Virus record (IMG/VR): IMGVR_UViG_3300047095_000752
Coordinates: 1 to 64,000 of that record
Length of the DNA stretch: 64,000 nucleotides
Reading direction: 5' to 3' (one strand)
The notes under the pieces were generated by a model. That model had not been told where the DNA came from and did not search any database. It saw nothing but the letters and a program-made list of their open reading frames with translations. The stretch's first letter is position 1; each line of letters opens with the position of its first letter. Shown here one piece after another: positions 3,102 to 23,830 of the stretch. The translations under genes and the position numbers were made by a program.

Positions 3102-3119
3102 TATTCAATATATATAATG

Positions 3120-4433
3120 CTAATGAGATTCCGTTTGTTCACCAGATCGAATTATGTAAAATACTGATATCAATTTAAATATTTTTCGCATCAAATGTGT
3201 CTTATTGGTTACTGGATCTATATGTTCATATAAGTCATTTTCCAAAGAGCGAACCACAATTCCTTCCCGACCTTTGAATTGATTCTTGTTCAACATACTA
3301 TGGTGCACTAAGGTGGTCGGACCATCTACATATTCTTCAAGGACACCTTCGTAGTACGGACCTTTATATAGACACTTCACACATGGTAAATTAAATGCTT
3401 TTGTATACGATTCTAATATATCGATGTGTTGATATTTACCATTAATTGTAATATCGAAGAATTTATATTCTTTAGCTGTACAACCATAATTCATATCTTG
3501 AACGCCGTTACCATATATTTCACCATATAGAACAATGTCATCACCCCCAGATCCGCCATGTCCCTGTGATATAGATTCTGCGAATCCCCTATTATTATTC
3601 CTAAGATTATACAATAGATCTTTAACTCGTGAATCTAATATCGGTAGTAAATATAGATCGACGTATGGTGTTTCGGCTATGTTAAAAATAGTATTGAAAT
3701 AGGGCACATTATTATATAGAGAATTTATAATTTTACTTTTCCAGCAGTTATTAAATATATTGGTATGGTATTTGAATAAGGTTTTCTTTTTAAATTTTAC
3801 ACTGAATTCTCTAACAATCTTTAACTGAGTGGTATGACTTCCTGCAACAAATTCAAATTTACCTTTAGGGTTCTTAACATACCCCGCCCGGAAGTTTGTA
3901 CCGTGTATTTTCTCAGTTATATAAATCGTTTCACCTCCACTAAAAGCTCCGGGATAATTTCTATAATTTTCAATACCAGTGTAATTCGTGAACGTACCAT
4001 ATTGATTTACGATATACACATTAGAGTCGTACCCAGCAGTTTCATAATTATATGCGTTATAATATTTAGTTTTATCATCACCTACCTTGTCACCGGCTTC
4101 AATGTGTATGGCAAATCCAAAACTGGGTTCCGCCCTTATATTCGCCGCCATTATTCTAACGTGTGTATCAGCCATAACATGCCCCGAAGGGAGTGTCCCA
4201 CAATATTTGGTTATCTCCCATTTATCCGTCCATTCTCTTGGGACTAGACTGTTCGGTGGGAAATATATAATTGGATCATTTACTTTATACTTACCTTTTG
4301 GTACAATTACCCACCACCCATTGATTCGGATCTTCTCTAATAAATCCGCATTTGGGTGTTTTTGTACATCTGATATAGTTTCTACTTTTACAGCAAAAGT
4401 TGACATGAAGTTCCTTTCTTTACCGATATCCAT
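3120..4433 (-). CDS. RNA ligase, DRB0094/Rnl5 family (start probably near 4406)
   Basis: N-terminal HPNADLLE OB-type module, motif I TEKIHGTN, YGEIYG, FFDI, EGIVVR and the C-terminal KIFK. Confidence 0.88.
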   Translation of the reverse strand: MDIGKERNFMSTFAVKVETISDVQKHPNADLLEKIRINGWWVIVPKGKYKVNDPIIYFPPNSLVPREWTDKWEITKYCGTLPSGHVMADTHVRIMAANIRAEPSFGFAIHIEAGDKVGDDKTKYYNAYNYETAGYDSNVYIVNQYGTFTNYTGIENYRNYPGAFSGGETIYITEKIHGTNFRAGYVKNPKGKFEFVAGSHTTQLKIVREFSVKFKKKTLFKYHTNIFNNCWKSKIINSLYNNVPYFNTIFNIAETPYVDLYLLPILDSRVKDLLYNLRNNNRGFAESISQGHGGSGGDDIVLYGEIYGNGVQDMNYGCTAKEYKFFDITINGKYQHIDILESYTKAFNLPCVKCLYKGPYYEGVLEEYVDGPTTLVHHSMLNKNQFKGREGIVVRSLENDLYEHIDPVTNKTHLMRKIFKLISVFYIIRSGEQTESH

Positions 4434-4731
4434 GATTTTGAGTATAAATTTGAGCTACACTTTTCCGGCGAGTATATAACACTTGTGCAATCGGACCTGC
4501 TATATTAGCACTATATGTAACCCCGAGTATTATACTACGAGTGAAATAATTTAATTTTAAAAAACTTAATGTAAATATACGATTTTTATATTTTCGGCGA
4601 CTATTACATCTTGATGTTATACACATATCATTTTTAGATTTTGTTATAACTTTAGACATGAGAAATATTAATTTACGAATTGAACTCAAACATAAGTTTT
4701 TGTCAACCTGCGATAAAATGGATTTATTCAT
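4420..4731 (-). CDS. Small hypothetical protein
   Basis: 103 aa ORF with a GGAG-type RBS upstream. Confidence 0.45.
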   Translation of the reverse strand: MNKSILSQVDKNLCLSSIRKLIFLMSKVITKSKNDMCITSRCNSRRKYKNRIFTLSFLKLNYFTRSIILGVTYSANIAGPIAQVLYTRRKSVAQIYTQNHGYR

Positions 4732-4742
4732 GAGTTCTCCTA

Positions 4743-4774
4743 TGGGCGCGGATCTAATATTGATCCGCGCCCAT
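4743..4774. terminator. GC-rich hairpin after the Hen1-ligase gene
   Basis: Inverted repeat atgggcgcggatc-taatatt-gatccgcgcccat. Confidence 0.5.
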
Positions 4775-4783
4775 CTATTTATA

Positions 4784-6988
4784 TTACAACGTTTTATCGA
4801 CTACACCAACAGAACTCATTCCGAGAAATGCAGCCACATACTTGAGTCTAGTCTCATGCCGATTATTCAAGAATGCATCTAATATTATTTTAGAGCATTC
4901 AAATTCTTGAATAGCAAGTCCACGCTTTTTAGCGACTTGGCGATGTGTTATATTTTTGAAATATTCTTCATTTTCATATAGAGGGAGTCCGTAAGTCAAA
5001 TTTAAATACTTATGTCCCCGGACTTTAAGAGCGGGTTGGATATAATATCCGGATGGTAATACACTTGAAAAATTATTCAATGGTTTATATACAAACCCTT
5101 CGAGTAAAGGTAGATCTGGATATGTATTGAAGGTAAGAGTTTCAGAAGGAGAACTACCGCAACGAGAGAGCCAGTCCAGTGTATTGTTTGCCATATCGTG
5201 TTCATCCGTTATAACGGTATATTTGCATGGCTTTAGTATTTTACAATCATCTGATATGATATCTATGTATTTCATCATATCCAAATTAGACATTGTATAA
5301 CCGTGTATAAGAGATCTTTTATGCTTGGTACCGATAGCAAGTACATGAAATGGTCGAATTTCAATATCAGTTTCTTTAGTAAATTCGTTGAGTGTATTCA
5401 ACACGGTCTCAACATACGCCGTATCCTTACCAGAATGTATATTGGATAGATATTGGGATTCGATTGCTGCGTAGAATTGCTCGTTAAGCATTGTTTTTGC
5501 AGCGTACGACCAAGGTAGAAGCTCAGCATCCAGAATAATAAAGGACACTTCCATCCCGATTTTTTCTTCAAGGGCGCTTATATTTTTTGATATTTCTGAA
5601 TGTAGGACGAGCTTTATATTTTGTTCATCTTCATTCTTGAAAAATTCAAATCCACCACGAGAATTTATTATAAGGGTTTTATCGTACCCTTTTTCTTGAG
5701 CAGCTTCAAAATTCTTAAACCACAATATTTGAGTTCGAGAACCCATATACTTAGTCTGTTGAATTAATTTAGTTACGCCACGCTCTCTGTAGTATTTAAA
5801 CGCACCCAGAGGATGTTCAATATAAGAGTCGAATTGTCCGTATAAAGTTCTATAATAGTCGAGTTTATTTTCTGGAAGTAGATGCTCCTTAAGAGTCTCA
5901 ACCGGAGACACTGTAGGTGCCATGTAAAATATATTCTTCGAGTTACTTATGAATGCACGTGACGTATACCCACGCCCAATTTCCTTCTGAGATACAGAGT
6001 AATCAGACACAGGGAGGTATATGTTACCTTGCATTTTATTCAAATTTTTAAGAGATTTAAAGTCGATCTGTCGTTCAATTTTATTTTTTCGAGGTTTTCT
6101 ATAATCGGTTGTGTCAAGAGTCCATTCGAGAATTCGCTCAGGACTCCATTCGGTTGGATCAACTTGTATTGAAAATATCCTATCTTCAACTTCACCTTCT
6201 TTTGGCGGATATGGTTTTGATATTGTTATCTTGTTATCTATAAGAGATTTATGTGTAGCGAATATACAGAAGGAGGGCTGCATATTCTCAAATTCTTCAG
6301 TCGGTTCTATTATATCAATATATTCAATATTGTATAAGTCGGATAGATAACTAACCACTTCGCGGCTAAATTGGTCTTTTGTGTATTCGACGCAATGGTC
6401 TCGCCGACGGAGGCTACCCGGCTCTATCGAATAGAATTTATTGAATTCAATATTAGGGGTAGTTAGATATAAATACTTCGGTACAAATATGTTTTTAATT
6501 AAATCTAAAATTTTAATACGATCACCATATTCAAAGTGCTCAATAGCTTCCACACAAGTCAATAGATCGGGGAGACAATCGCTTATAGTTATATTTGGGT
6601 ATAGTATATTACTTTCAATTACACGAACTTTATCAGTTGTTTTTATCTTTTTTATTTTATAAAAATCCTTTTCAATTCCAAGGATTCTAAGTTTCGGATG
6701 TTCTTTTACCAACATCTCCAACAGTTTACCTTCGGAAGTACACAGGTCCACCATGTACTCAATTTCAGGCATATCATTGAGTTTATTACATATCAATTCA
6801 TGTCTTTTCTGATGTAACGATATCTTCTTATCAACCAGTTCAGCTACAGATACTGGTGGGGTATATCCAAATTCTTGCTTAAATTTTTGCTTTAATGTTT
6901 TGTTATCTTGACAGAATTTGTTCATAATCATAGAGAAGTTTTTAGAATATCTTCTAACCGTAGTTGAATCGTTATCCGACATCTTCAT
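4784..6988 (-). CDS. Fusion of Hen1 RNA 2'-O-methyltransferase domain and Pnkp adenylyltransferase (RNA ligase) domain
   Basis: Hen1 MTase motifs DLCTSEG, VEAIEH, TTPNIEFN and RRDHCVEYT. Pnkp-ligase motifs YMAPTVSP, IEHP..AF.YY, KYMGSR, LDAELLPW, EGFVYKP, QPALKVRG..YL..TYG, KR.LA..EF and terminal DKTL. Confidence 0.85.
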   Translation of the reverse strand: MKMSDNDSTTVRRYSKNFSMIMNKFCQDNKTLKQKFKQEFGYTPPVSVAELVDKKISLHQKRHELICNKLNDMPEIEYMVDLCTSEGKLLEMLVKEHPKLRILGIEKDFYKIKKIKTTDKVRVIESNILYPNITISDCLPDLLTCVEAIEHFEYGDRIKILDLIKNIFVPKYLYLTTPNIEFNKFYSIEPGSLRRRDHCVEYTKDQFSREVVSYLSDLYNIEYIDIIEPTEEFENMQPSFCIFATHKSLIDNKITISKPYPPKEGEVEDRIFSIQVDPTEWSPERILEWTLDTTDYRKPRKNKIERQIDFKSLKNLNKMQGNIYLPVSDYSVSQKEIGRGYTSRAFISNSKNIFYMAPTVSPVETLKEHLLPENKLDYYRTLYGQFDSYIEHPLGAFKYYRERGVTKLIQQTKYMGSRTQILWFKNFEAAQEKGYDKTLIINSRGGFEFFKNEDEQNIKLVLHSEISKNISALEEKIGMEVSFIILDAELLPWSYAAKTMLNEQFYAAIESQYLSNIHSGKDTAYVETVLNTLNEFTKETDIEIRPFHVLAIGTKHKRSLIHGYTMSNLDMMKYIDIISDDCKILKPCKYTVITDEHDMANNTLDWLSRCGSSPSETLTFNTYPDLPLLEGFVYKPLNNFSSVLPSGYYIQPALKVRGHKYLNLTYGLPLYENEEYFKNITHRQVAKKRGLAIQEFECSKIILDAFLNNRHETRLKYVAAFLGMSSVGVVDKTL

Positions 6989-7610
6989 TTCCTTCGTCGA
7001 GCCAAGTTTTAGAGATTGTAATTAATTTATCAACAAATGCTTCATGTGCTGTATATATTCCACCGCGCCGGATAGTCAAAAATAACGATAATACATATGC
7101 CTTCTGTATGAATTCCGATGTCGTCATAGCTTCTTTTGGATTTAATTTCAACATAAAGCACGAACGCATTTCAATCGTCGATTCAACACTTGATGCATTA
7201 ATGTTGTAATCATCAAATAGCTTTACCGAGAATTCTAAGTCGTTCACAATCGGACCAATTATTATTTCTTGATTTTGCGTTTTTTGAAAAAATTGTTCGT
7301 CGGTTATATCACCTTTCGGTGGTCGTCCCGCGATGCAAGACCGTAGGGTTTCCCATAGTGCTTTTAGATGATACGGACATGCTGCAGCAACTTCTGAATT
7401 CAAATAGAAATCTAAATTCAATTGTCGTGCAACTTTTAAGAATTGCATATCATCTAATTCGGTTTTAATTTCATATTGCGTATCTACCCCGTTGACGAAT
7501 TGACCCGTGAATTTAAGTCCACGCAGGTCCTGTTCAAATGGGGGAGAATTTGGATTCTTAACTAATATATAAGATAAATGTGGTATATCACTTTTTATTG
7601 AAAAATACAT
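6972..7610 (-). CDS. Hen1 N-terminal (ligase-activating, Hen1_L-like) domain
   Basis: LSYILVKNP resembles DLGYLLHKHP; AYVL...VDKL....WL matches the end of the Hen1 N-domain; it lies directly upstream of the Hen1 MTase. Confidence 0.72.
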   Translation of the reverse strand: MYFSIKSDIPHLSYILVKNPNSPPFEQDLRGLKFTGQFVNGVDTQYEIKTELDDMQFLKVARQLNLDFYLNSEVAAACPYHLKALWETLRSCIAGRPPKGDITDEQFFQKTQNQEIIIGPIVNDLEFSVKLFDDYNINASSVESTIEMRSCFMLKLNPKEAMTTSEFIQKAYVLSLFLTIRRGGIYTAHEAFVDKLITISKTWLDEGNEDVG

Positions 7611-7611
7611 A

Positions 7612-9603
7612 TCAACCCTTTCCTATTCGTTCCAAAAATTCATCTTCAGATATAATTGTAATACCCTTAGATGCGGCTTTGGCTAACTTTGCCCCGGCAT
7701 TCTCACCGACTACAAGAAGAGTAGTCTTTGACGTTACCGATTTATCAACTTTACCACCGTTCTCCAAAATGAGTTCGTGGATACGGGGGCGGGGAGTGAA
7801 CAAGACCCCTGTCACACAAACCAGTTCACCAGCGAAGGCGTCCGATTTTGCTACAGTATTCATAGTCTCATTTTCATCAACTTTCATGTTAAATCCATAA
7901 GATACAAGATCTAATATAAGCTTTTCATTTTTATATTCTCTAAACCAATTATAAATACTATTTGCAACAACATCACCAATTCCATCTATAGACTTTAAAT
8001 CTTCTACTTTCTGAGATCTTAATGTTTGAATATCCTTGAATGTATTTGCAAGAAGAGAAGATGTTGTTTTACCAGTATTGGGAATTTGTAACCCAGCTAA
8101 TACTTTTTCAAATGGCATATTTTTTGATTTTTGAATGCTATTATATATATTTTTAGAAGACTTTTCAGCCATACCGTCGAGTTGGCAAATATCATCCGGT
8201 GTCATATCATATAGATCTATTATGTTATGAATCATATTTGCATCATACATTTTATCAACTATAGCGTCACCAAGACCATCAATGTCCATCACATCTTTGG
8301 ATGCCCAGTATAACACTTTACCTACGATTTTTCCAAGACAATCTGGATTCTGACATATAAGAGCTACATTATCATTATCATTAGCAACATCAAAACAACA
8401 TACCGGACATAATTCTGGTCGTTCAAATTTTTCCAAATTTTTCCCAATACGATTTTCCATGTTAACATATAATATCTGAGGGATAATTTCACCGGCTTTT
8501 TTAATACCGACAATATCTCCGATTCTTATATCCAGTTTCTCTACTTGATCAAAATTGTGGAGAGAAGCCTTAGCTACAACGGATCCACATATCTCAACAG
8601 GTTCAAGTATAGCTACCGGAGTCAGTGCGCCGGACTTACCAACCTGAACATCTATGTTCAATACTTTAGTTTCTTCAATTTCTTCTGCATATTTATAAGC
8701 GACTAACCATTTCGGGTGACTTGATGTATCTTTGAATTTAGAGCGACTTGCTATATCATTTATCTTAACGACAACACCATCAACCGGGTACGGAAGTGTA
8801 GTTTTATTTGCACCAAATTTATCAATAACAGATTTTAAGTTATCACCACCATTTACAATTTCATACTCGGGAGTCTTAAACCCAAGATCTTTTATTGTGC
8901 TTAATACTTGAAATTGATTTGTTAAGCCATGTTGTAACGGATCAACGATATCATATGCTATCATTGATAATTTACTTTGTTTCGATATTTTTGAATCTTT
9001 TCTTTTCAATGCTCCGGCGGCTGCATTTCTTGGATTTGCTAATAATTGTTCACCATTCAATTTTTTGTTACGATTTAATCCTTCAAATACTTTAAATGAC
9101 ATATATACTTCACCACGAATTTCAACGATATTATTCATACTATTAGGAATACTTAATGGAACTCCATTAATAACTTTTACATTTTCAATAACATTTTCAC
9201 CGATAGTTCCATTACCCCGAGTGAGAGCTTTAGTCAAAATTGAATTTTCATATATCAATGATATAGCCAACCCATCGATTTTATACTCAACCGAATATTC
9301 ATCTGATACTAATTTTGATTTTTTAGTAAATGAGTCCAATTCTTTAACCGAATATACCTTTTCTATACTCATCATCTTTTTAGAATGTTTTATTTTTTCG
9401 AATTCACTTACAGGGTCAGAGCCAATTCGTTGGGATGGAGAATCTGATATATAAGCACTGGGGTTATTTCTCTCATATTCAAGTAATTGATTGAACTTTT
9501 TATCATATTCTTCATCTGATATAATTGGATTAGAATCGTTATAGTATAAACAACTGTGTTTGTTCAACTCACTCTTAAGACTGCAGTACTCTTGGTTTGT
9601 CAT
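7612..9603 (-). CDS. ligA: NAD-dependent DNA ligase
   Basis: YY..SNP.ISDEEYD, KIDG adenylation motif, TRGNG, EIRGE, NPRNAAAG, C4 zinc finger, HhH repeats and BRCT domain. Start moved to MTNQEY at 9603. Confidence 0.96.
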   Translation of the reverse strand: MTNQEYCSLKSELNKHSCLYYNDSNPIISDEEYDKKFNQLLEYERNNPSAYISDSPSQRIGSDPVSEFEKIKHSKKMMSIEKVYSVKELDSFTKKSKLVSDEYSVEYKIDGLAISLIYENSILTKALTRGNGTIGENVIENVKVINGVPLSIPNSMNNIVEIRGEVYMSFKVFEGLNRNKKLNGEQLLANPRNAAAGALKRKDSKISKQSKLSMIAYDIVDPLQHGLTNQFQVLSTIKDLGFKTPEYEIVNGGDNLKSVIDKFGANKTTLPYPVDGVVVKINDIASRSKFKDTSSHPKWLVAYKYAEEIEETKVLNIDVQVGKSGALTPVAILEPVEICGSVVAKASLHNFDQVEKLDIRIGDIVGIKKAGEIIPQILYVNMENRIGKNLEKFERPELCPVCCFDVANDNDNVALICQNPDCLGKIVGKVLYWASKDVMDIDGLGDAIVDKMYDANMIHNIIDLYDMTPDDICQLDGMAEKSSKNIYNSIQKSKNMPFEKVLAGLQIPNTGKTTSSLLANTFKDIQTLRSQKVEDLKSIDGIGDVVANSIYNWFREYKNEKLILDLVSYGFNMKVDENETMNTVAKSDAFAGELVCVTGVLFTPRPRIHELILENGGKVDKSVTSKTTLLVVGENAGAKLAKAASKGITIISEDEFLERIGKG

Positions 9604-9626
9604 ACATTTTTTCCTTAAAAAAATAA

Positions 9627-9660
9627 GGAGGGAGTAATAGCAAAATGCTATCACTCCCTC
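9627..9660 (-). terminator. Hairpin terminator downstream of the GC-rich gene
   Basis: gagggagtaatagca-aaa-tgctatcactccctc with an A-run on its left (U-tract on the minus strand). Confidence 0.55.
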
Positions 9661-9738
9661 TATATCACAGGGGATGCTGCTGATGTTTATATTTTGTTTT
9701 TATTTTTGGGATATATGTATCAAAGACTGTATGGGATG

Positions 9739-10773
9739 TCAGTCTTCGGCATTCAACTTTTTATGTTGCCCGATCTTGGGGACGTTGAAACCCAAGTCGG
9801 TCAGGAGGGCACCCATCGCGGAGTGTCCCTCGTAGCGAGATGCACCCTTCGCGACCGCGCCCTCATCCATGCGGGTCGCAATCATGCGACGCCACACGGC
9901 GAACATCGCAGCCAGTTGCTGCGACTGGGCGGTGACAAATACCCCGGTGTCCACCACAATGCTGGTGGTGTGGTGGTAATTGCCCTCCAGCCATGGACGC
10001 GAACGCCATGCGTTGGGATCGAGATCCCAGCCGCAGTTACTGTACATGGCGGGCACGTACCCTGCCGCCTTCATGAACGCATCCGAGCCGTGCTGCTCGT
10101 ATGCCTTCAAGACCCAACCCGCGTGACCGGAGATGACAGACATCTCCTCAACATGGTGAGCCATGTTGCGGTGGTCATTGAACGACTTCATGATGTTGAG
10201 GCGTTCCTTCCAGTTCGCCTTGATGGCGACTTGGTACGTGCAGTGCGCTGCACAGCGCACTCGGAAGGACATGACCTGCCCATCCGCGCTGAACTCTCCC
10301 CGCATGATGGGGGAAGACAACGTCCGCTGGGCGTTGTCCGGTTTCGTGTAGACCACACGCATCTGCTGCTGCAGATGCCCCGCACCGGCGGGGATGGACT
10401 CGGGAAAGCGAGACCGGTGCGGATCAAGCTGCCACCCGTTCGCTTCCACGAACTCGTGGAGCTTCCTGTCGTATTGACACGACAGCAACTCCGCCGGGAT
10501 GATGGGGTAGTTCTTCAGAACCACCTCTTCCGCCACAGCGTTGAACTCTTTCTTGGTCAGCTTGTACTGACCATCACTGTTGTGCGCCACCTTTCGAATG
10601 GCATGGCTGGACACCGGGTCCAACGCCACGTTGTCGAAGGCGAGCACCGTATCCGACAACGGGCTGAACGTCAGTCCGTGGTGGGCGATGTCTGCTTCGG
10701 GCGTGTTGTTGATTGCGTCCATCAGATTGTTGAATTGCATGCTTAACATCTCCTGTAAAGATTTTACCGACAC
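9739..10773 (-). CDS. GC-rich hypothetical protein, probable early gene
   Basis: 344 aa ORF; a sampled 60-nt line is 62% GC against about 25% in flanking genes; motif A promoter directly upstream. Confidence 0.75.
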   Translation of the reverse strand: MSVKSLQEMLSMQFNNLMDAINNTPEADIAHHGLTFSPLSDTVLAFDNVALDPVSSHAIRKVAHNSDGQYKLTKKEFNAVAEEVVLKNYPIIPAELLSCQYDRKLHEFVEANGWQLDPHRSRFPESIPAGAGHLQQQMRVVYTKPDNAQRTLSSPIMRGEFSADGQVMSFRVRCAAHCTYQVAIKANWKERLNIMKSFNDHRNMAHHVEEMSVISGHAGWVLKAYEQHGSDAFMKAAGYVPAMYSNCGWDLDPNAWRSRPWLEGNYHHTTSIVVDTGVFVTAQSQQLAAMFAVWRRMIATRMDEGAVAKGASRYEGHSAMGALLTDLGFNVPKIGQHKKLNAED

Positions 10774-10801
10774 ATAGAATCTATCCCATAAGATTCTTTT
10801 A

Positions 10802-10821
10802 CAATAATTTATATATATAAT
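10802..10821 (-). promoter_or_regulatory. Phage promoter motif A (minus strand A(T/C)TATATATAT(A/T)AA(T/A)TATTG)
   Basis: caataatttatatatataat; about ten near-identical copies, almost all intergenic. Confidence 0.7.
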
Positions 10822-10845
10822 AGAATCAAAAATACTATATATATT

Positions 10846-11229
10846 TTAAAAAGATAATTTCAAAATCTCATCCAAACTTAACTTCGAGAAGTCATCCAGT
10901 GTTGGAATTTTAATCTTAGTTTCACTTTTCGAATTATATTCATTTGCAATTTGACTCAATTCATTATGTTTTAATCCAATCTGTGCTATATATTGTTGCT
11001 GTATTTTTATATTAGTTTCGGACTTATACGATTCCATAAGACTTTTTAATTCGGAGCATGATTGTGTATACGTATTTATAATACCATTTAATTCTAAAGA
11101 CACATGACCTTTATCAGTTGGAGTTGGAGTGTCTGAATGATATACGTAATAAAATACACCCAATCCAATTATAAGTATAACCAATACAATATTTACACGG
11201 ACAGATCTACTTTGCAAGAACTTACGCAT
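10846..11229 (-). CDS. Membrane-anchored hypothetical protein
   Basis: N-terminal TM helix VNIVLVILIIGLGVFYYVY followed by coiled coil. Confidence 0.65.
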   Translation of the reverse strand: MRKFLQSRSVRVNIVLVILIIGLGVFYYVYHSDTPTPTDKGHVSLELNGIINTYTQSCSELKSLMESYKSETNIKIQQQYIAQIGLKHNELSQIANEYNSKSETKIKIPTLDDFSKLSLDEILKLSF

Positions 11230-11579
11230 GGGGGTTCTCCTACTGTGGTTTTTGGATTTTGTTTTACGTCAAATGTGAGAATGCCATCAACATATGTATG
11301 TGTTATGATGGGTTTATAATGGAATATTGGAGATAATGGTAAATAGACTTTTTCGATTGTATGTTGGTACGAATATATAGTAGTAATGTCTTCATTATCA
11401 ACAACTTTATACAATACAATGCTACCATCAAAGTACTCATATAAAATCTTGCTCACACCGGGGTATATGTATTTCACTGTACAACTGTATGTACCGTCGC
11501 CACCACATTTACTATATACCCTTGCCCCATATGGTATCGGGTATTGTCCGAATAAAAACTTAAAAATTTTATTTAACAT
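11193..11579 (-). CDS. Hypothetical protein
   Basis: 128 aa ORF with an AAGGAA RBS. Confidence 0.55.
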   Translation of the reverse strand: MLNKIFKFLFGQYPIPYGARVYSKCGGDGTYSCTVKYIYPGVSKILYEYFDGSIVLYKVVDNEDITTIYSYQHTIEKVYLPLSPIFHYKPIITHTYVDGILTFDVKQNPKTTVGEPPCVSSCKVDLSV

Positions 11580-11619
11580 AGAATTCCTTTCATGTTGAAG
11601 TTGTTGATAATTTTTTACT

Positions 11620-11650
11620 AAAAAATGGGGGACCGAAATCCCCCATAAAA
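11620..11650 (-). terminator. Rho-independent terminator
   Basis: aaaaaa-tggggga-ccgaaa-tcccca type hairpin just after the stop of the 11652 ORF. Confidence 0.65.
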
Positions 11651-11651
11651 C

Positions 11652-11837
11652 TTACTTCTTGGCGCTGTGTTTGGGGCAGTAGTACAACTTACCCTCATTC
11701 GTCCACCCAGCCGGTGCCGCCTTCAGGAACGCCGCCTGTTCCGACGCCGCCCTCCCCGACTTTTGTCCGCATTTCTTATTGGACTTTGGATCTCGGTGGG
11801 AACAGTTGATTGCTACTTTCTTTGCGGTTACTGCCAT
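11652..11837 (-). CDS. Small basic zinc-finger protein
   Basis: C..(10)..C ... GW ... CPKH; AGGAG RBS; followed by a terminator. Confidence 0.7.
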   Translation of the reverse strand: MAVTAKKVAINCSHRDPKSNKKCGQKSGRAASEQAAFLKAAPAGWTNEGKLYYCPKHSAKK

Positions 11838-11883
11838 TTTTATTCTCCTTGTTAATGTAAATCCACATAATGTGGGTGCAGGG

Positions 11884-12408
11884 TCAATGTTCCTTGTACA
11901 GTATTTTCAACTTATTTATATTCTTCAGCGGGACATCCACCCCACGCGAAGTCTTCGTAGACCCAATCTGCTCGTCCTCTACACTCATGATCAAGTCCTT
12001 CAAGGTCTTCGAAGAAATTTGACCATGATACAGGGATATTTTCTTGGGTTTGGATTTGCTGATGAATTTCTTCATTTTGGTTGCTGTGTTCAATATATAT
12101 TTGTAGAGATACAAGCAGGGTAGCCTTTCCGATTGTATCATCCGGTAGTGGTTCGAGAAGATGCTAGACTTCGATACCGAATCGACTATATTCCCAAGGG
12201 AATCGCCTCTTGGTATAATGTTGTTTATAATCTTTAGTTGATTGTCAACATATTCGACGAGACTTTTATTCGAAGTCTTATCCCGGTTATTCACAATGAG
12301 ATTAACCGTTAGCTTCGGGTCGTTATGAAGGAGTTGATTTAGTATGAAGAATTTCGGATTCCCAGCAAACTTGATAAATAACACATCCAACTTAGCAACT
12401 GTGTTCAA
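11884..12408 (-). CDS. Hypothetical protein
   Basis: 174 aa ORF with a GAGGAG RBS. Confidence 0.6.
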   Translation of the reverse strand: MNTVAKLDVLFIKFAGNPKFFILNQLLHNDPKLTVNLIVNNRDKTSNKSLVEYVDNQLKIINNIIPRGDSLGNIVDSVSKSSIFSNHYRMIQSERLPCLYLYKYILNTATKMKKFISKSKPKKISLYHGQISSKTLKDLIMSVEDEQIGSTKTSRGVDVPLKNINKLKILYKEH

Positions 12409-12424
12409 TCTATGATTCTCCTCG

Positions 12425-12454
12425 AAAAAAAGCGCCCTCGGAATTGAGGGCGCT
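12425..12454 (-). terminator. Rho-independent terminator
   Basis: aaaaaa-agcgccctc-ggaatt-gagggcgct. Confidence 0.75.
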
Positions 12455-12465
12455 ACGGCTGGTGG

Positions 12466-12579
12466 TTAGATTAAGGCATTCTCGCCGTCATCGCGAGCAC
12501 GAGACCGGAACTTGTTATAGTTACGATCCATTTTCCGCCCATATATTAGATTATACAACCAATAACTTACGTACCGCAT
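12466..12579 (-). CDS. 37-aa peptide MRYVSYWLYNLIYGRKMDRNYNKFRSRARDDGENALI (absent from the ORF track)
   Basis: AGGAG RBS 8 nt before the ATG; terminator directly after the stop. Confidence 0.55.
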   Translation of the reverse strand: MRYVSYWLYNLIYGRKMDRNYNKFRSRARDDGENALI

Positions 12580-12603
12580 TTTCAATCTCCTACGAGTTTG
12601 AAT

Positions 12604-12746
12604 TGGTCCCCGGTGAGAAACTCAGGTACTTGCGAAACCTGTTTCTTCTTTTCCCATGAATTCGTGTACTTGTACACACCGAAGCCCAAGCTTACCACCC
12701 GCCCTAGAAGGACTCACGAAGTGGAATGTGTCATACAAGCGGGACC
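12604..12746 (-). ncRNA. Candidate structured RNA or 5' leader, about 140 nt
   Basis: The ends pair (GGUCCC/GGGACC); internal hairpin GAAA-CAGGU...ACCUG-AG-UUUC; lies below a motif A promoter with no long minus-strand ORF. Confidence 0.4.
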
Positions 12747-12805
12747 TCAAATTCATGCTCTGGTGGATTATCCAGTTGGACCGGAGTTAGTACATAGTCC
12801 AGATT

Positions 12806-12825
12806 CAATAATTAATATATATAGT
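12806..12825 (-). promoter_or_regulatory. Phage promoter motif A
   Basis: caataattaatatatatagt. Confidence 0.7.
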
Positions 12826-12855
12826 TTAAAATGTTATTTTGAAAGGGTTATTAAG

Positions 12856-13494
12856 TTAAAGTCCACGGCTCATAATATCACTTAAACGTTTGTAGCAAGT
12901 GATTGTAGTCTTAACATCATCCAACGCACTGTGTGCATTTTCATTCACTACACCACAAAATTGAGCTATTGTTCCTAATTGATTATTTTCCAGAGTTTTA
13001 TAATGCCTCTGTTCGGTTTGGAATTTTAATTCATTTATCGGTCGAATCCAGTTTGTAAAGTCCATAGCTTTCCAACGTAAATCTATAGTCTGTCGCAATA
13101 AATGTCGATTAAACAAAGACTTCTCCGGAGTTCGATCAAAGTCTAGAAATGGCTCCATAAACTTTGTATCAAACCCATAGTAGTTTTGACCGAATGGATC
13201 TATAATTTGACAGACCGGAGAAATCTTTTTAATCCAATCTACAAACAAATCTCGAACTACACTTTGGGGTGGATATTGAGTTAACATCTCAGGTGTAATT
13301 TTTGTTACGTTTTGAGCTTCTTGGGTGAATCTATCTGGATACTGGATAGAAATGTAATGTTGAAATATATCTTCAGTTGCGTTGAAATTTTCATCTACTC
13401 TTATAGCTGCAATTTGAAATATTTCGTTATATCCAGCTTTTAATCCTGTTGTTTCGAAATCAATACATACAAGAGGTATATTTAAATCTGACAT
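12856..13494 (-). CDS. DEDDh 3'-5' exonuclease (DnaQ/epsilon-like)
   Basis: DFETTG, QNYYGFD and HSALDD motifs. Confidence 0.88.
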   Translation of the reverse strand: MSDLNIPLVCIDFETTGLKAGYNEIFQIAAIRVDENFNATEDIFQHYISIQYPDRFTQEAQNVTKITPEMLTQYPPQSVVRDLFVDWIKKISPVCQIIDPFGQNYYGFDTKFMEPFLDFDRTPEKSLFNRHLLRQTIDLRWKAMDFTNWIRPINELKFQTEQRHYKTLENNQLGTIAQFCGVVNENAHSALDDVKTTITCYKRLSDIMSRGL

Positions 13495-13571
13495 TTACGG
13501 TGGTCCTTTTGGTTGTAATATTTATATATAAAAAAATAACCTAATCTTTTGGATTTGGTTATTGAATTTGT

Positions 13572-13647
13572 TGGTACGAACGGTGTGAATCGAACACACG
13601 ACTCAGAGTATATAAGACTCCGCTTCTCACCACTGAATTACGTTCGC
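13572..13647 (-). tRNA. tRNA-Ile(UAU)
   Basis: Cloverleaf GCGAACG...GGAGT-CT TAT AT-ACTCT...GTGTG TTCGATT CACAC CGTTCGT ACCA. Confidence 0.88.
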
Positions 13648-13690
13648 ATAAAAATAGGTGGGGAGGCTATCCTTTATGACAGACTCCCCA

Positions 13691-13767
13691 TGGTGATCGC
13701 GGTGGAATTCGAATCCACACTGTAAGATTTTTAAGATCTTTGCCTCGACCAGTTGGGCTACGCGACC
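13691..13767 (-). tRNA. tRNA-Leu(UAA) with a short variable loop
   Basis: GGTCGCG...AAGAT-CT TAA AA-ATCTT ACAGT GTGGA TTCGAAT TCCAC CGCGATC ACCA. Confidence 0.85.
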
Positions 13768-13786
13768 ATTATTAAACTTTCTAAAA

Positions 13787-13860
13787 TAACCCGACAGGAC
13801 TTTCACCTGCAGTTCGTAACCATTTAGTAGGAGTGTGTTTAATATTTTCACCACGGGTTA
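13787..13860 (-). ncRNA. tRNA-like element with an unpaired anticodon arm (pseudo-tRNA)
   Basis: Acceptor stem TAACCCG/CGGGTTA and T arm GCAGG-TGAAAGT-CCTGT are intact; no anticodon stem; no CCA. Confidence 0.5.
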
Positions 13861-13864
13861 TTCT

Positions 13865-13937
13865 TGAGAATGACTGGATTTGAACCAGCGACACGACGAT
13901 GACTTTCGTCTGCTCTACCAGACTGAGCTACAATCTC
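13865..13937 (-). ncRNA. tRNA-like element with an aberrant 6-nt anticodon loop
   Basis: GAGATTG TA GCTC..GAGC A GACGA-AAGTCA-TCGTC GTGTC GCTGG TTCAAAT CCAGT CATTCTC. Confidence 0.65.
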
Positions 13938-13973
13938 AATAGTTTTAATAGAGAATTAACTCTATGTTTTTGA

Positions 13974-14048
13974 TGGCTCTAGGGATTCGAGTCGAACGAA
14001 TAACGGGGAATTTAACAGATTCCTGCTCTCCCATTGAGCTACCCTAGA
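13974..14048 (-). tRNA. tRNA-Asn(GUU)
   Basis: TCTAGGG...GGAAT-CT GTT AA-ATTCC...CCCTAGA GCCA. Confidence 0.9.
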
Positions 14049-14058
14049 AAAGTTTTAT

Positions 14059-14760
14059 TCAAATATGAGACCACGTTTTTCTTTGAATTATTTTTTTAAT
14101 GTTATTATCGCTAACATTAAACATTTCACCTAATTTAACATAATTCTTTATTTCTGGGTATAACTTACGTATTTCTAATACTTGTTGTTTGGTGAGTTTG
14201 TTTGATATATAATTTGGATTGCCTTTTCTAGAGATTTTTTCTTTCGGCGGTATAGGTTCCCAGTGTAAATGTTTCCATCTTCTATTGTTAACAACTTCAC
14301 ATATAGTGCGTTGACCGACACCAAATAATTTACTTAATTTTTTCTGTGATATGTTATTGTTATTGTATATTTTTCTTATTTCTAATACTTGGTTATCGGT
14401 TAATCTAGAGCTTTTGCTATCTATACCTACGGCGTGGGTAATTAAATTATTTTTATGCGCATGTGTATTATTTTCTTTGACCGTACACCATTCTAGATTT
14501 TTGAGATCATTATTTGATTTATTACAATCCATATGATTTACAACGGCATCTTCGAACCAAGAGTCTGGATTAAAAGCGAACATTAGTAACCGATGGACCC
14601 GTAATTTTCTTCTTTTTGGTTTTAATGCTAAATGAACTGTATAATATCCACTATCTAAACTTGCTTTAACAAATTTACCACTATCATTATTCCGAACTCG
14701 ACCTAAATTACTAATAGAATATTTATCGGTTAAATGACAATCTCTCCAAATTTCTTCCAT
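14059..14760 (-). mobile_element. Free-standing NUMOD4-HNH homing endonuclease within the tRNA cluster
   Basis: EIWR...YSISNLGRVR, VHRL, VNHMDCNKSNN...NLEW...EN..HA, and two SxLTxxQVLEIRKxY HTH-like repeats. Confidence 0.88.
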
Positions 14761-14789
14761 ATATGATCCAATGCTACAATAAAAAATAA

Positions 14790-14866
14790 TGGTGCCAACA
14801 ACTGGATTTAAACCAGTAACTTACGATTTAGAAGATCGTTTCTCTATTCAATTGAGATATGCTGGC
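14790..14866 (-). tRNA. tRNA-Arg(UCU)
   Basis: GCCAGCA...ACGAT-CT TCT AA-ATCGT...TGTTGGC ACCA. Confidence 0.88.
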
Positions 14867-14881
14867 ATAGAAAACTTAAAA

Positions 14882-14958
14882 AGATATGGTGGTATGAATT
14901 ACACATACCGTCACACGGACCCGATGTCCGGTGTTTTATCCTTAAACTAACCATATCT
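14882..14958 (-). ncRNA. tRNA-like element with extended acceptor stem, 6-bp T stem and non-canonical anticodon loop
   Basis: AGATATGGT/ACCATATCT; D arm GTTT..AAAC; CGGAC-ATCGG-GTCCG; GGTATG-TGTAATT-CATACC. Confidence 0.55.
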
Positions 14959-14964
14959 AAAATT

Positions 14965-15042
14965 TGGAGCAGCGCCACTGACTTGCACAATGGATCATCC
15001 AACTGGAGTGCTGGATGGTTTTACTATTAAACTACGATCTGC
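14965..15042 (-). ncRNA. tRNA-like element ending in CCA, with long anticodon stem and 6-bp T stem
   Basis: GCAG..CG/CGCTGC TCCA; D arm GTTT..AAAC; ATCCAGC-ACTCCA-GTTGGAT; CCATTG-TGCAAGT-CAGTGG. Confidence 0.55.
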
Positions 15043-15059
15043 ATTGTAGATTCAATTGT

Positions 15060-15470
15060 TTCGGTCCCTGAAGACTTCTGGACCGACTTCACCATATGAC
15101 CGGGTAACTACGATGTCGGTATGTTAGCGACTCCGTCTACGCGACCGTCTTCGTGTGTATAAATAGTAGCATACCTCAAAAGCCCAAGTCAAGAGGTTTC
15201 TAAAATTTCACTTACACTGGTGAATCCGAACTGAGTTATAAATGGGAAAAAGCATCCGAAACCCGTTTACACACACTCAGCCATAATTTATAAGAGTACC
15301 GGTAAACGCAAGGCATTTACATCCCCGGTACTCCAAACCAAGCCACGTAGCTCAGTAAAGTCAAATAAAACATCGGGTATACCATAAAGTATACCCGATG
15401 GCTTCGCACCGATAGGGTACGAAAAATCCCACCAAGCCCACATGCGCTCCATGATGTTTATGATGGGATC
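15060..15470. ncRNA. Hairpin-dense non-coding tract, candidate ncRNA(s)
   Basis: Stems tcggtcc/ggaccga, ctgagt/actcag, gagtaccgg/ccggtactc and catcgggtatac/gtatacccgatg; no ORF in the track. Confidence 0.45.
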
Positions 15471-15475
15471 AAAAA

Positions 15476-15640
15476 GGTACCCGGATATCGGATTTGAACC
15501 GACGATCCACCTCTATCTATAGTTCGAGGTGACCCCTAGCTTCTATCAACACCTCATGTGACTAGCAAGGGTGTCTTCAAGATTCTTGTCTGACGTTCGG
15601 GAAGTCACTCCTTATATCAGACTCCTTTAGGACCGGGATA
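15476..15640 (-). ncRNA. Expanded tRNA-like RNA of about 165 nt
   Basis: Canonical T arm GTCGG-TTCAAAT-CCGAT; acceptor CCCGG/CCGGG; extra hairpins GTCTGA/TCAGAC and CACCTC/GAGGTG; directly below a motif A promoter. Confidence 0.55.
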
Positions 15641-15660
15641 GTTTAAACTTAAACTGTATA

Positions 15661-15680
15661 CAATATTTAATATATATAAT
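15661..15680 (-). promoter_or_regulatory. Phage promoter motif A driving the tRNA cluster
   Basis: caatatttaatatatataat. Confidence 0.7.
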
Positions 15681-15681
15681 A

Positions 15682-16263
15682 CTAAGCTCGTAAAGAAGCT
15701 ACACTAGCACTCATACTAGCGTATGCCGAGCGGGTTCCAACAGATGTAGGATCGTACTGTACAGTGTTATGAGTTTTGATCCCAAGACCACTACCAACGG
15801 CAAATGCGTCGATATTTGCGCCGGAGAAAATAAATTGCCAGTTGTATACTTCTTCTTGATGTGTGATTTTATTTTTAATATCATTCAATGTGAAATGACG
15901 ACTTGCATTTTCGTCACCATCTGTAATAATACAAATGATAACTTTTTCAGGTCTCTCTGGTTCCGGTAGTTTATTCAAATATACACCAATGTGATCTACA
16001 GTCTTTCCAATAGCATCGAATAAAGCTGTATACCCATTAGGTTGATAATTTTCTTTACTTAATAGTTCACAACTATTTAGATTTTCTACTTCACCGATAT
16101 CAACTTGAGTATCAAATATAGTTTTAATAATTTGAGCGGTTCCGGGTATTTTTCTTTGATCTTCAATAAGTGAATTATACCCGCCAATCGCATCATCTGT
16201 TAAAGAATGCATTGATCCGGACTTATCAACAATCATTCCAATTAGAGTATGGTCTTTCTTCAT
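15682..16263 (-). CDS. VWA-domain protein
   Basis: MIDAS motif DKSGSM, TALFDAIG, ITDGDENAS and WQFIFSGAN. Confidence 0.88.
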   Translation of the reverse strand: MKKDHTLIGMIVDKSGSMHSLTDDAIGGYNSLIEDQRKIPGTAQIIKTIFDTQVDIGEVENLNSCELLSKENYQPNGYTALFDAIGKTVDHIGVYLNKLPEPERPEKVIICIITDGDENASRHFTLNDIKNKITHQEEVYNWQFIFSGANIDAFAVGSGLGIKTHNTVQYDPTSVGTRSAYASMSASVASLRA

Positions 16264-16448
16264 TGTGTTGTTCCTTGTGTGTTTTGTTGTTAGTTGCTTA
16301 TATGGATTGTATCACATGATTTGTAGATTTGCAAGTGGATTAAAATAACTTTACTATAATTTTCATTATTATTTACTACAAAAAAGAATGGCTTTGCTAG
16401 AGCCATTCTTCCAACCATTCTTTCTAACCTAACTATACAACCGGCGAA

Positions 16449-16610
16449 CTACAACCGGCGACCCTTCTCCAGCGCCTTCTCCAGTTCTTTTTCGCGATTA
16501 GACCCCCATTTTTCCTCCCTCAAATTCCTGCAAAAGGCGTCGCGCTGCGCCTTTTCTTCGTCCCGCCGCTGTTCGTTCCGCGCCTTTTCTTCATCTGCAC
16601 GCTCTGACAT
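16449..16610 (-). CDS. 53-aa highly charged GC-rich peptide (absent from the ORF track)
   Basis: MSERADEEKARNEQRRDEEKAQRDAFCRNLREEKWGSNREKELEKALEKGRRL; sits between a motif A promoter and a terminator-like hairpin. Confidence 0.55.
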   Translation of the reverse strand: MSERADEEKARNEQRRDEEKAQRDAFCRNLREEKWGSNREKELEKALEKGRRL

Positions 16611-16685
16611 TTTTATACCCTTTCATCGTTTGTTTATAATATCTCAGTTCACATGAGCCGAGGATATCGAATAACTTCATGATAG

Positions 16686-16705
16686 CACTAATTAATATAT
16701 ATAAT
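16686..16705 (-). promoter_or_regulatory. Phage promoter motif A (variant)
   Basis: cactaattaatatatataat. Confidence 0.6.
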
Positions 16706-16744
16706 TAAATACTATATAATATAAACTAAAAATAGATCAAAAAA

Positions 16745-16779
16745 TAAACCATTATAACTTGTTAGGTTATAATGGTTTA
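16745..16779 (-). terminator. Terminator after the second tRNA-Ile
   Basis: taaaccattataac-ttgttag-gttataatggttta with an A-run to the left. Confidence 0.65.
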
Positions 16780-16786
16780 CGAGTAT

Positions 16787-16862
16787 TGGTAGACCGTGTA
16801 AGAATTGAACTTACGACTCCGTGTATATAAGACGCGGCTTCTAACCACTGAATTAACGGTCC
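16787..16862 (-). tRNA. tRNA-Ile(UAU), second diverged copy
   Basis: GGACCGT...CGCGT-CT TAT AT-ACACG...GTAAG TTCAATT CTTAC ACGGTCT ACCA. Confidence 0.85.
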
Positions 16863-16874
16863 ATCGAATGGTTG

Positions 16875-17460
16875 TAAAACCCTGAGTGCTATCCGGCGAA
16901 GGCTAGCACTCAGGGGGTCTGACTACACATTCCTATGCACTGGGAGTCGCACATAGGTCTTTCGTAGGAGCCCTCGCCAAAGAGCCTACTAGTGTAGAAA
17001 TATCATAGCCCGGTGAGTAGGCGGGGATAGACGCTACTCACCGGGTGGTGCTCTTGGACTTAGTCTGTGTGGACTTAGTCACTGAGCAAGATTTTAAAGA
17101 CTTTCGTCTTGAGTTGAAATTTACGACTTCTTGAAATCTTAGAGAAGTCGTAGTATCGTATACCATCTCGTGCACCGTCGAATCCAAAGGGCTGCATTCC
17201 CCTTTGCGGAAGGATTCGATGGTATGGTGATTTCCGGAACACTGTTCCGCGATACCGTTGTGTGGATTCGCGTGGAGTCAGTCACGCTGGTAGTGCGGCT
17301 GGGGGACAGCCGATGAGGGGAAAAGAAAGTCCAGCCAAGGAGTTATGTGCAGGGCTTTGGCAAACCCTTTGGGAGACTCCTTGGCTGGATAATTAAAAAG
17401 CTTCAACCCAGACAATGACTCTGAACCCAAGTGGAAGGAAATGGGTTATGCGACCAGAAT
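16875..17460. ncRNA. Large, highly structured non-coding element of about 600 nt
   Basis: GC-rich, no ORF in the track, many long stems: cctgagtgcta/tagcactcagg, cccggtgagtag/ctactcaccggg, tacgacttct/agaagtcgta, tcgaatcc/ggattcga, tccagccaaggagt/actccttggctgga. Confidence 0.6.
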
Positions 17461-17481
17461 CTTTAATCTAAGTTTTGCTTT

Positions 17482-17501
17482 CAATAATTTATATATATAG
17501 T
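17482..17501 (-). promoter_or_regulatory. Phage promoter motif A
   Basis: caataatttatatatatagt. Confidence 0.7.
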
Positions 17502-23810: not shown

Positions 23811-23830
23811 CAATATTTAATATATATAAT
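23811..23830 (-). promoter_or_regulatory. Phage promoter motif A
   Basis: caatatttaatatatataat. Confidence 0.7.

Follow-up and report, generated by a model that had tools for sequence, protein, structure and literature searches.

A GC-rich, hairpin-dense gene with its own transcription signals upstream of end-repair genes in an AT-rich freshwater phage

The GC-rich gene and its transcription signals

The stretch of DNA described here (the window) comprises 64,000 nucleotides (nt), positions 1 to 64,000, at the start of the IMG/VR virus record IMGVR_UViG_3300047095_000752. The record is classed as linear, 245,225 bp long and of an estimated completeness of 78%, with a G+C content (GC) of 34.8%. 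The gene under study lies on the minus strand at 9739-10740 and is the sharpest long GC island of the 64-kb window. Calculated over 200-bp windows, the GC between about 9700 and 10800 is 0.51-0.635, against 0.32-0.37 below and 0.23-0.29 above, and the borders of the jump coincide with one minus-strand coding sequence. An initial annotation, made from the letters alone, had described a gene of about 60% GC in an AT-rich context with its own promoter and terminator; this description holds, with a measured GC of 59% against 34.8% for the record, and with a minus-strand motif at 10799-10821 and, on the same strand, a terminator at 9618-9660. The features of the locus are listed below (aa, amino acids; ORF, open reading frame; GC1, GC2 and GC3, GC at the first, second and third codon positions).

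9739-10740, minus strand: family gene, coding sequence of 333 aa (P0002), GC 0.59, GC3 0.78, hairpin-dense
10799-10821, minus strand: conserved AT-rich promoter motif ATTATATATATAAATTATTGTAA, 23 nt, one of 22 strict copies in the record
10776-10797, minus strand: 5' stem-loop, a 7-bp inverted repeat (AGAATCT / AGATTCT) with an 8-nt loop, just 3' of the promoter motif
10750-10754, minus strand: Shine-Dalgarno sequence AGGAG, nine bases ahead of the ATG at 10740
9618-9660, minus strand: intrinsic terminator with a 15-bp stem, 7 G-C pairs and a T-run, closing a monocistronic unit
9694-10746, plus strand: antisense open frame of 350 aa, a shadow ORF

The stop codon occupies 9739-9741 and the frame extends to a GTG at 10773. 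The limits proposed at first, 9739-10773, stand at the stop end, but the ATG at 10740 is the likelier start, since the AGGAG lies nine bases 5' of it and gene callers on other assemblies also returned a protein of 333 aa. GC1, GC2 and GC3 of the gene are 0.58, 0.41 and 0.78, the genome mean of GC3 being 0.31 (standard deviation 0.10). Inverted repeats analogous to the stem-loop at 10776-10797 also trail the motif in the related lineages L010 and L020, and equivalent terminators are located 3' of the homologues in L007, L009, L010, L014, L020 and L022.

The strict core of the promoter motif, TATATATATWAA, is present in 22 copies in the record, 21 of them on the gene-bearing minus strand, and the extended consensus is aTTATATATATTAAnTATTGnA. 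The same motif was found 5' of the family gene in seven lineages (L007, L009, L010, L011, L020, L022 and L038), and it precedes many short ORFan operons and the tRNA region. A GC3 of at least 0.55 was determined for 8 of the 19 first genes behind the motif, compared with 13 of the 341 other ORFs (Fisher p = 1.6e-6). At the motif copies at 130091, 116941, 152270 and 167722 of the record and at 23828, 49800 and 63027 of the window, an inverted repeat and a T-run follow within about 10-35 nt; these terminator-like hairpins may act as attenuators or give rise to very short RNAs.

The record has two RNA_pol_Rpb2_6 matches in different ORFs, at 51491-52723 of the window and 78061-79203 of the full record, and no Sigma70_r2 match was found in the record. 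Two genes resembling the beta subunit of multisubunit RNA polymerase (RNAP), together with no sigma70, place the phage among the RNAP-encoding jumbo phages. In those phages a conserved AT-rich motif centred near -10 is found upstream of presumed early operons, and wherever transcripts were profiled such a motif is an early promoter read by the virion RNAP (review PMC7598289). By this published rule the motif at 10799-10821 would, by analogy, be an early virion-RNAP promoter and the gene would be expressed early. One single-sequence search did not detect the phiKZ chimallin in the record. Two metatranscriptome runs from one freshwater sample contained small contigs on 9669-10790 and 11971-12777 and no contigs on the downstream DNA ligase gene or on 10812-11915; contigs on the gene but not on the adjacent genes fit a separate transcription unit. 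Being environmental, these contigs speak for the presence of the transcript and not for its timing.

Distribution and inheritance of the GC island

A run search detected the stretch in lake-water metagenomes of at least 20 studies. The diverged relatives L007 and L009 carry the gene at the same site, with 89% aa identity and 59% GC, in a region of about 82% nucleotide identity. Searched exhaustively with HMMER, 1.84 billion cluster representatives yielded seven other clusters at E < 1e-3, six of which are convincing relatives with 23-33% identity, all on phage-like AT-rich contigs. An additional family cluster (P0013) was obtained from a word-index search with the family alignment. The cluster P0012 (E 4.7e-4) was taken as spurious; it lies on a eukaryotic-looking contig of 109 kb (L037) with a spliced gene call, a PDCD9 gene and a piggyBac-type transposase gene. 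No bacterial or archaeal homologue was found among the 1.84 billion representatives or among 5.8 billion clusters, 50,697 phage records searched with megablast and tblastn gave no match to the gene, and IMG/VR and Joint Genome Institute (JGI) metagenome contigs scanned with the family alignment added no members. The family gene diverges faster than its neighbours: between the window and L010 the identity is 32% for the family protein and 59% for the ligase, and between the window and L014 it is 24% and 52%, respectively.

The GC3 of homologues and of their neighbours was compared wherever DNA could be fetched. In seven of eight lineages, down to 24% aa identity, the gene has a GC3 of 0.50-0.78 and the flanks 0.06-0.22. 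The values are given below, together with the z score of the minimum free energy (MFE) of the coding sequence against synonymous shuffles; identities are to the window protein.

Window gene: GC3 0.78; MFE z -9.5
L007: GC3 0.75; MFE z -3.75
L009: GC3 0.73; MFE z -4.3
L010 (P0006), 33% identity: GC3 0.754, flanks 0.06-0.16; MFE z -1.0
L011 (P0007), 25% identity: GC3 0.62, flanks 0.12-0.22; MFE z -4.5
L020 (P0008), 24% identity: GC3 0.65, flanks 0.07-0.18; MFE z -8.7
L038 (P0013): GC3 0.55, flank 0.15; MFE z -2.5
L022 (P0011), 25% identity: GC3 0.50, flanks 0.16-0.21; MFE z -5.05
L014 (P0009), 22% identity: GC3 0.27, flanks 0.15-0.20; MFE z -4.2

L014, the one lineage whose family gene is not GC-rich, has no promoter motif at about 1380-1500, where a tRNA-like sequence immediately precedes the gene.

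Between the window gene and its orthologues in L007 and L009 the synonymous divergence (dS) is 1.26-1.29, near saturation, and 43% of third positions differ, while GC3 remains within 0.73-0.78. Among the synonymous differences, those from A/T to G/C and those from G/C to A/T are in balance, with 40 versus 44 and 41 versus 51 in the L007 and L009 comparisons. The gene is at a compositional equilibrium of its own, opposite to that of the surrounding genome. Such an equilibrium excludes a recent acquisition that is still drifting to the composition of the recipient and requires a fixation bias specific to the gene. A direct comparison of L007 with L009 (region equivalent to 1775-12858 of the window) shows the ligase and Hen1_N genes to be about 99.5% identical (dS 0.015-0.017), whereas the family gene, its upstream genes and the Pnkp gene differ (dS 0.33-0.74); this mosaic of divergence points to recent recombination with breakpoints around the GC-rich gene.

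Two readings would make the island foreign to the phage, and both had been raised by the initial annotation. A chimeric assembly or contamination would explain the compositional jump, which is the only observation on its side. In JGI and Logan assemblies, made from at least five samples, the window sequence recurs at 100% identity with both island borders included, contigs from further runs cross both borders, and diverged relatives show the same architecture; a chimera or contamination is thereby ruled out. Recent horizontal acquisition from a GC-rich host or another donor, with the island keeping the donor composition, would agree with the sharp jump exactly at the gene borders and with active recombination at this site (ligase dS 0.017 and family gene dS 0.36 between L007 and L009). 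It is nevertheless very unlikely, because the searches above returned no cellular homologue; because phages with ligases of 52-59% identity agree in the position, promoter and terminator of the gene; and because GC3 remains at about 0.75 in orthologues at a dS of 1.3 and at 0.50-0.75 in homologues of 24-33% identity, with changes in the two directions balanced. An adjacent mobility gene is absent. Nor were other marks of a recent island found: there is no donor homologue of matching composition, be it cellular or GC-rich viral, no drift of composition to the recipient, and relatives carry the gene at the corresponding site. The GC island is an inherited, maintained, family-level trait and not a recent import.

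Secondary structure, codon use and the encoded protein

The coding sequence has a folding energy of -464 kcal/mol, compared with -383 ± 8.6 kcal/mol for dinucleotide shuffles (z = -9.4). The z scores listed above refer to a stricter null, in which synonymous codons were permuted so that protein and codon usage were preserved. Under this null the ligase and Hen1_N genes reach -0.6 and -1.8, 12 random AT-rich genes have a mean of -0.13 (standard deviation 0.91, range -1.6 to +1.1), and five other GC-rich genes range from +0.3 to -5.2, the latter value belonging to 194754-196049 of the record. Perfect hairpins with a loop of 3-8 nt and a stem of 6 bp or more number 24 in the window gene, against a mean of 3.8 (maximum 7) in shuffles; the corresponding numbers are 12 against 2.2 in L020 and 11 against 3.1 in L022. 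Hairpins of at least 7 bp occur in the gene at 7 per kb, the highest density of the record (mean 0.64), and 7 of the 55 GC-stem hairpins of the genome are located in it.

The hairpins are mutually unrelated in sequence and their positions are not conserved. A conserved RNA fold was considered and rejected: the differences between the window gene and L007 affect 107 of its base pairs, pairing is lost in 83 of these, and shifted controls fare no worse. The recurring feature of the family is being structured, with no particular fold. Rfam covariance models matched only six tRNAs at gathering score within 9000-17500. The window phage shares a 41-nt stretch at 10493-10533 without any difference with L007 and L009, 13 third positions included (uncorrected P about 1e-4); it includes the purine-rich segment GAAGAGGTGG.

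The codon use of the gene was compared with the tRNAs of the phage, which form one cluster.

13572-16862, minus strand: phage tRNA cluster with Ile-TAT (two copies), Leu-TAA, Asn-GTT, Arg-TCT and one tRNA with an aberrant anticodon loop

All six tRNAs of the record lie inside the window, and the cluster is found 3-6 kb upstream of the family gene. They read ATA, TTA, AGA and AAY. Across 250 bulk genes, Ile is most often encoded by ATA (43%), Leu by TTA (42%) and Arg by AGA (40%), and the three together account for 88.5 per 1000 codons, whereas the GC-rich gene has none among its 332 codons. This strongly supports the codon argument of the initial annotation, by which genes needed before the phage tRNAs accumulate would use host-like codons. 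The gene also lacks CTA, TCA and ACA and prefers CTG, CGC, ATC, AAG, GAG, AAC and TAC, the last being used for 10 of 10 Tyr. ATA, TTA and AGA are equally absent from the homologues in L010, L020 and L038 and are found at 6, 14 and 38 per 1000 codons in those of L011, L022 and L014; in the flanking genes of homologues they mostly amount to 62-163 per 1000, with one L011 flank at 23. The zero use of these three codons is the strongest support for a message that is readable without the phage tRNAs. The host is probably richer in GC than the phage; for comparison, phiKZ has about 37% GC and Pseudomonas aeruginosa about 66%.

The cluster has two peculiarities. The tRNA-like gene at 13864-13938 (minus strand) was reported by ARAGORN as 'tRNA-???' with the anticodon 'gt' and scores 48.7 bits with the Rfam tRNA model; it may be a non-canonical or decoy tRNA. 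A homing-endonuclease gene of the HNH/NUMOD4 type at 14059-14760 (minus strand) lies among the tRNAs of the window phage and of L009 and was not called in L007; this variability among relatives indicates a mobile insertion.

Other genes of raised GC3 are listed below. The smaller GC-rich ORFs of the window had already been pointed out, and their GC3 values agree with that observation.

11652-11837, minus strand: GC-rich ORF of 61 aa with Cys/His pairs, GC3 0.66; another recoded gene, smaller than the first
16449-16610, minus strand: GC-rich ORF of 53 aa, GC3 0.65, the first gene behind the motif copy at 16703
47148-48497: GC3 0.56, with an ATPase PHROG as its only annotation
205448-207021, 212180-212464, 219013-219824, 194754-196049 and 124962-125846 of the full record: further GC-rich genes, GC3 0.56-0.78

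The 61-aa ORF is 93-97% identical at the aa level in L007, L008 and L009, compared with 72-80% for its AT-rich neighbours, and its Cys/His pairs suggest a zinc ribbon. Several of the five further genes of the full record are hydrophobic and membrane-like, and several stand behind the same promoter motif; none of the five has a family match. The other GC-rich genes and the genes behind other motif copies are barely annotated, with one borderline pentapeptide match besides the ATPase PHROG. In the remaining GC-rich genes of the window phage ATA, TTA and AGA together amount to 19 per 1000 codons.

The ratio of nonsynonymous to synonymous divergence (dN/dS) of the sense frame is 0.06-0.07 between the window and L007 or L009, compared with 0.04-0.05 for the neighbouring ligase and Pnkp genes. 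The gene is real, protein-coding and under purifying selection. An AlphaFold2 model built from a 10-sequence alignment has a predicted local distance difference test score (pLDDT) of 78 and a predicted template modelling score (pTM) of 0.81. The residues I145, E149, F222, G227, Y228, W250, N254, H257, W283, R284 and R285 are invariant in the family alignment. As the initial annotation had stated, the gene is of unknown family: Pfam, PHROGs, NCBIfam and PADLOC gave no match, and a sequence profile search of the PDB returned only noise. The full model, compared with PDB and BFVD by Foldseek, in a wide VIA-align search and in a shape search of the ESM Atlas, matched nothing at E <= 0.001 (best Z 4.9), and a separate model of residues 120-333 had no fold match (best Z 3.7). 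The protein family is new and has no recognisable fold.

Two weak leads were followed. Residues 87-185 of the model align with many double-stranded RNA-binding domains (dsRBDs), among them those of Dicer-like proteins, TRBP, Staufen, PKR and ADAR1, at Z 3.4-4.9, a range that the tool flags as common by chance; the best alignment (Z 4.9, root mean square deviation 3.4 A over 75 residues) is below the level that the tool regards as meaningful. Of the alpha-beta-beta-beta-alpha fold of a dsRBD the model shows only two clear strands, and there is no sequence signal. A protein-language-model feature search ranked DUF932 (PF06067) first, with a score of 0.95, 185 of 256 features and 27 of 30 matches, a ranking unsupported by alignment or structure. 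DUF932 proteins of phages, plasmids and prophages are of similar length and share the phage and jumbo-phage habitat. Membership was rejected. The DUF932 Pfam hidden Markov model found nothing in P0001 (E <= 1), in 10 family members (E <= 10) or in a six-frame search of the genome; hhalign against an alignment of Escherichia coli YfjQ and seven phage proteins (8 sequences) gave a probability of 0.4%. The invariant N..DG, R..C.N and H of DUF932 are not those of the present family, and there was no structural match in BFVD.

Repair neighbourhood, explanation and comparison with known systems

The genes downstream of the family gene are as follows; the coordinates of the Hen1 N-terminal-domain protein were converted from L002 and those of the RNA ligase from L003, and those of the PNKP_ligase protein were likewise converted.

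7612-9567, minus strand: NAD-dependent DNA ligase (Pfam), immediately downstream of the family gene
6972-7610, minus strand: Hen1 N-terminal-domain protein of 212 aa (PF22032), stand-alone, with no methyltransferase domain reported
4784-6982, minus strand: Pnkp-type RNA repair protein of 732 aa with a PNKP_ligase domain (PF16542)
Between the PNKP_ligase protein and the RNA ligase, minus strand: ORF of 103 aa
3120-4406, minus strand: RNA ligase of 428 aa (PHA02142 / RNA_ligase)

The region 3120-9567 on the minus strand holds a complete nucleic-acid end-repair cassette. The family gene is directly upstream of repair genes in all five lineages with visible downstream DNA (the window clade, L010, L014, L020 and L022), and in each of these it keeps its own terminator. 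Adjacency to the ligase is kept in L007, L009, L010 and L014. The NAD-ligase gene follows in L010; in L014 it is succeeded by a methyltransferase-PNKP_ligase fusion and then by an RNA ligase. In L020 a protein with HD and P-loop-kinase domains is followed by Hen1_N/Hen1_L, and in L022 an HD and kinase protein lies downstream. On the upstream side, a glutamate-receptor-like ion channel (SBP_bac_3 and Ion_trans_2) is encoded two genes ahead of the family gene in L011 (2527-3576) and L014 (3-986). L011 also has a homologue of PspA/IM30, which together with the ion channel is unusual cargo for a phage.

The best explanation of these observations, to which a probability of about 0.5 is assigned as a whole, is that of an inherited phage gene, expressed early from a recoded and folded message, that serves a counter-defence module. 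The gene would be transcribed as its own unit from the conserved AT-rich promoter by the injected virion RNAP. Its G/C-ending codons, free of ATA, TTA and AGA, would let the message be translated by host tRNAs, with no need for those of the phage, as infection begins, and its many hairpins of 6-8 bp would leave little single-stranded A/U-rich RNA open to endoribonucleases or guide RNAs. Selection would thus favour both translation on host tRNAs and a compact, nuclease-resistant message, and selection rather than biased conversion is the probable cause of the composition. The constant position of the gene ahead of end-repair genes suggests a protein that assists the repair and counter-defence module or acts as its first responder, and that possibly binds RNA; this anti-defence role is a reasoned guess. 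The island as a family-level trait, the hairpin-rich coding sequence, the synteny with end-repair genes and the AT-rich majority (11 of 19) of first genes behind the motif had all escaped the initial annotation.

For the cause of the composition the main rival is a non-selective one, in which GC and inverted repeats result from a neutral or mechanistic bias such as GC-biased gene conversion or the perfection of quasi-palindromes by template switching. In its favour, the L007/L009 mosaic indicates breakpoints of recombination around the gene, the hairpins, which are perfect and the same on both strands, turn over quickly with no compensatory changes, and some other GC-rich genes are also over-structured, for example 194754-196049 (z = -5.2). 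Such a bias would, however, have to end exactly at the start and stop codons, to act most strongly at third positions and in a codon-specific manner (no ATA, TTA or AGA; TAC for 10 of 10 Tyr), and to recur in seven lineages with very different flanks, while neighbours with the same recombination history are AT-rich and the AT-rich homologue of L014 is still over-structured; this rival is considered unlikely. Also unlikely is a primary function in the nucleic acid itself, as a structured RNA or as a DNA element (origin or packaging signal), with the reading frame secondary. It would account for the z scores of -9.4 (dinucleotide) and -9.5 (synonymous shuffles), the top hairpin density of the genome and the 41-nt stretch invariant at 13 third positions, but it disagrees with a dN/dS of 0.06, that is, strong purifying selection on the protein, with a confidently predicted fold and protein motifs kept at identities as low as 20%, with base pairs that are not kept between orthologues, and with the lack of an Rfam family and of a GC-skew switch at the site. 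A further reading holds that the 350-aa plus-strand ORF at 9694-10746 is the real gene, or that both strands code. The codon-aligned antisense frame is stop-free in the window gene, L007, L010 and L011, where about 5 stops would be expected; a simple model gives P about 0.002-0.005 for each. In the window gene it is open only because the sense codons do not include TTA, CTA or TCA. The plus-strand ORF was rejected as a gene, since its dN/dS is 1.44-1.50 against 0.06 in sense. The frame is broken in L009 (1 stop), L020 (3), L022 (11) and L014 (13), GC1 exceeds GC3 in it as in non-coding DNA, and the neighbouring genes and signals are all on the minus strand, so that coding from the plus strand is scarcely credible.

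Several observations weigh against an early, recoded message in the service of counter-defence. The remaining 11 of the 19 first genes behind the same motif are AT-rich, and so are the repair enzymes themselves, which means that early expression or a repair role alone does not force recoding. The promoter is classed by analogy, and for RNA there is a small number of contigs of low depth, which come from one sample and were retrieved with the gene as bait. Neither trait is universal, as the L014 homologue is hardly enriched in GC and that of L010 has no excess structure. The hairpin pairs are neither conserved nor compensated between orthologues, and they are strand-symmetric Watson-Crick repeats with similar z scores in sense and antisense; an RNA-level cause is thus not separable from a DNA-level or mutational one. 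AAA, GAA and CAA are still used at 19-33% in the gene, and that its codons are host-like is a presumption. Finally, a protein with no fold or family match lends no support to any particular biochemical role.

A further proposal, held tentatively and on balance doubtful, is that of message hardening: the mRNA of an early counter-defence gene would have evolved synonymously to survive host RNA-targeting immunity, and its protein would direct or protect the adjacent repair machinery. The threats would be anticodon nucleases, mRNA interferases and the collateral RNases of Cas13 or type III systems, which all favour single-stranded A/U-rich RNA or U34 tRNAs, and the hardened message would stay translatable while ordinary AT-rich phage messages are crippled. 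In the nucleus-forming jumbo phages studied, the mRNA is the weak point towards Cas13 and type III CRISPR (bioRxiv 10.1101/370791, 10.1101/2022.06.20.496707). By analogy this makes a hardened message plausible here, to the extent that the window phage also forms a nucleus. If true, message hardening would be an anti-defence strategy at the nucleotide level, as yet undescribed for phages, and a new layer of the arms race, in which defence is evaded through mRNA composition, and it would be useful for the design of phage or synthetic messages that resist RNA-targeting systems.

The significance of the locus extends beyond that proposal. An island of deviating composition in a phage genome is routinely interpreted as a recent gene transfer; the present gene, with 60% GC in a phage of 35% GC, is old and inherited. 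A composition held gene by gene across very distant relatives is direct evidence for strong selection, or strong bias, on the synonymous sites of one phage gene. The locus links phage tRNA sets, early expression in RNAP-encoding jumbo phages and genes for RNA repair and counter-defence, and it defines a new protein family, which stands at the head of the repair cassette in uncultured freshwater jumbo phages of one clade.

With jumbo phages of the phiKZ/AR9 type the window phage shares two beta-like genes of multisubunit RNAP, the lack of sigma70 and a repeated, conserved AT-rich motif. The sequence of the motif is the window clade's own, and timing and polymerase are inferred here. The end-repair systems Pnkp/Hen1 and T4 Pnk with Rnl1 act on the 2',3'-cyclic-phosphate and 5'-OH ends left by metal-independent ribotoxins. 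The present arrangement resembles Pnkp/Hen1, and T4 Pnk with Rnl as opposed to anticodon nucleases, in that the gene lies directly upstream of genes for Hen1_N, PNKP_ligase, HD and P-loop kinase, RNA ligase and NAD-ligase proteins. It differs in that the family protein has no sequence or fold similarity to known components of these modules and is encoded in a separate transcription unit with its own terminator.

The closest parallel in codon use is the T4-type model, in which early and late genes differ in codon usage and phage tRNAs serve the AT-rich codons of late genes (comparative study PMC5683454). As in that model, the phage tRNAs of the window correspond to ATA, TTA and AGA, which are abundant in bulk genes, and a subset of presumed-early genes avoids these codons. 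In contrast to it, the difference is extreme (GC3 0.78 against 0.31, with zero use of three codons), is confined to single genes and is kept as a trait of one family down to 24% identity, and it is accompanied by an excess of secondary structure that the codon model does not predict.

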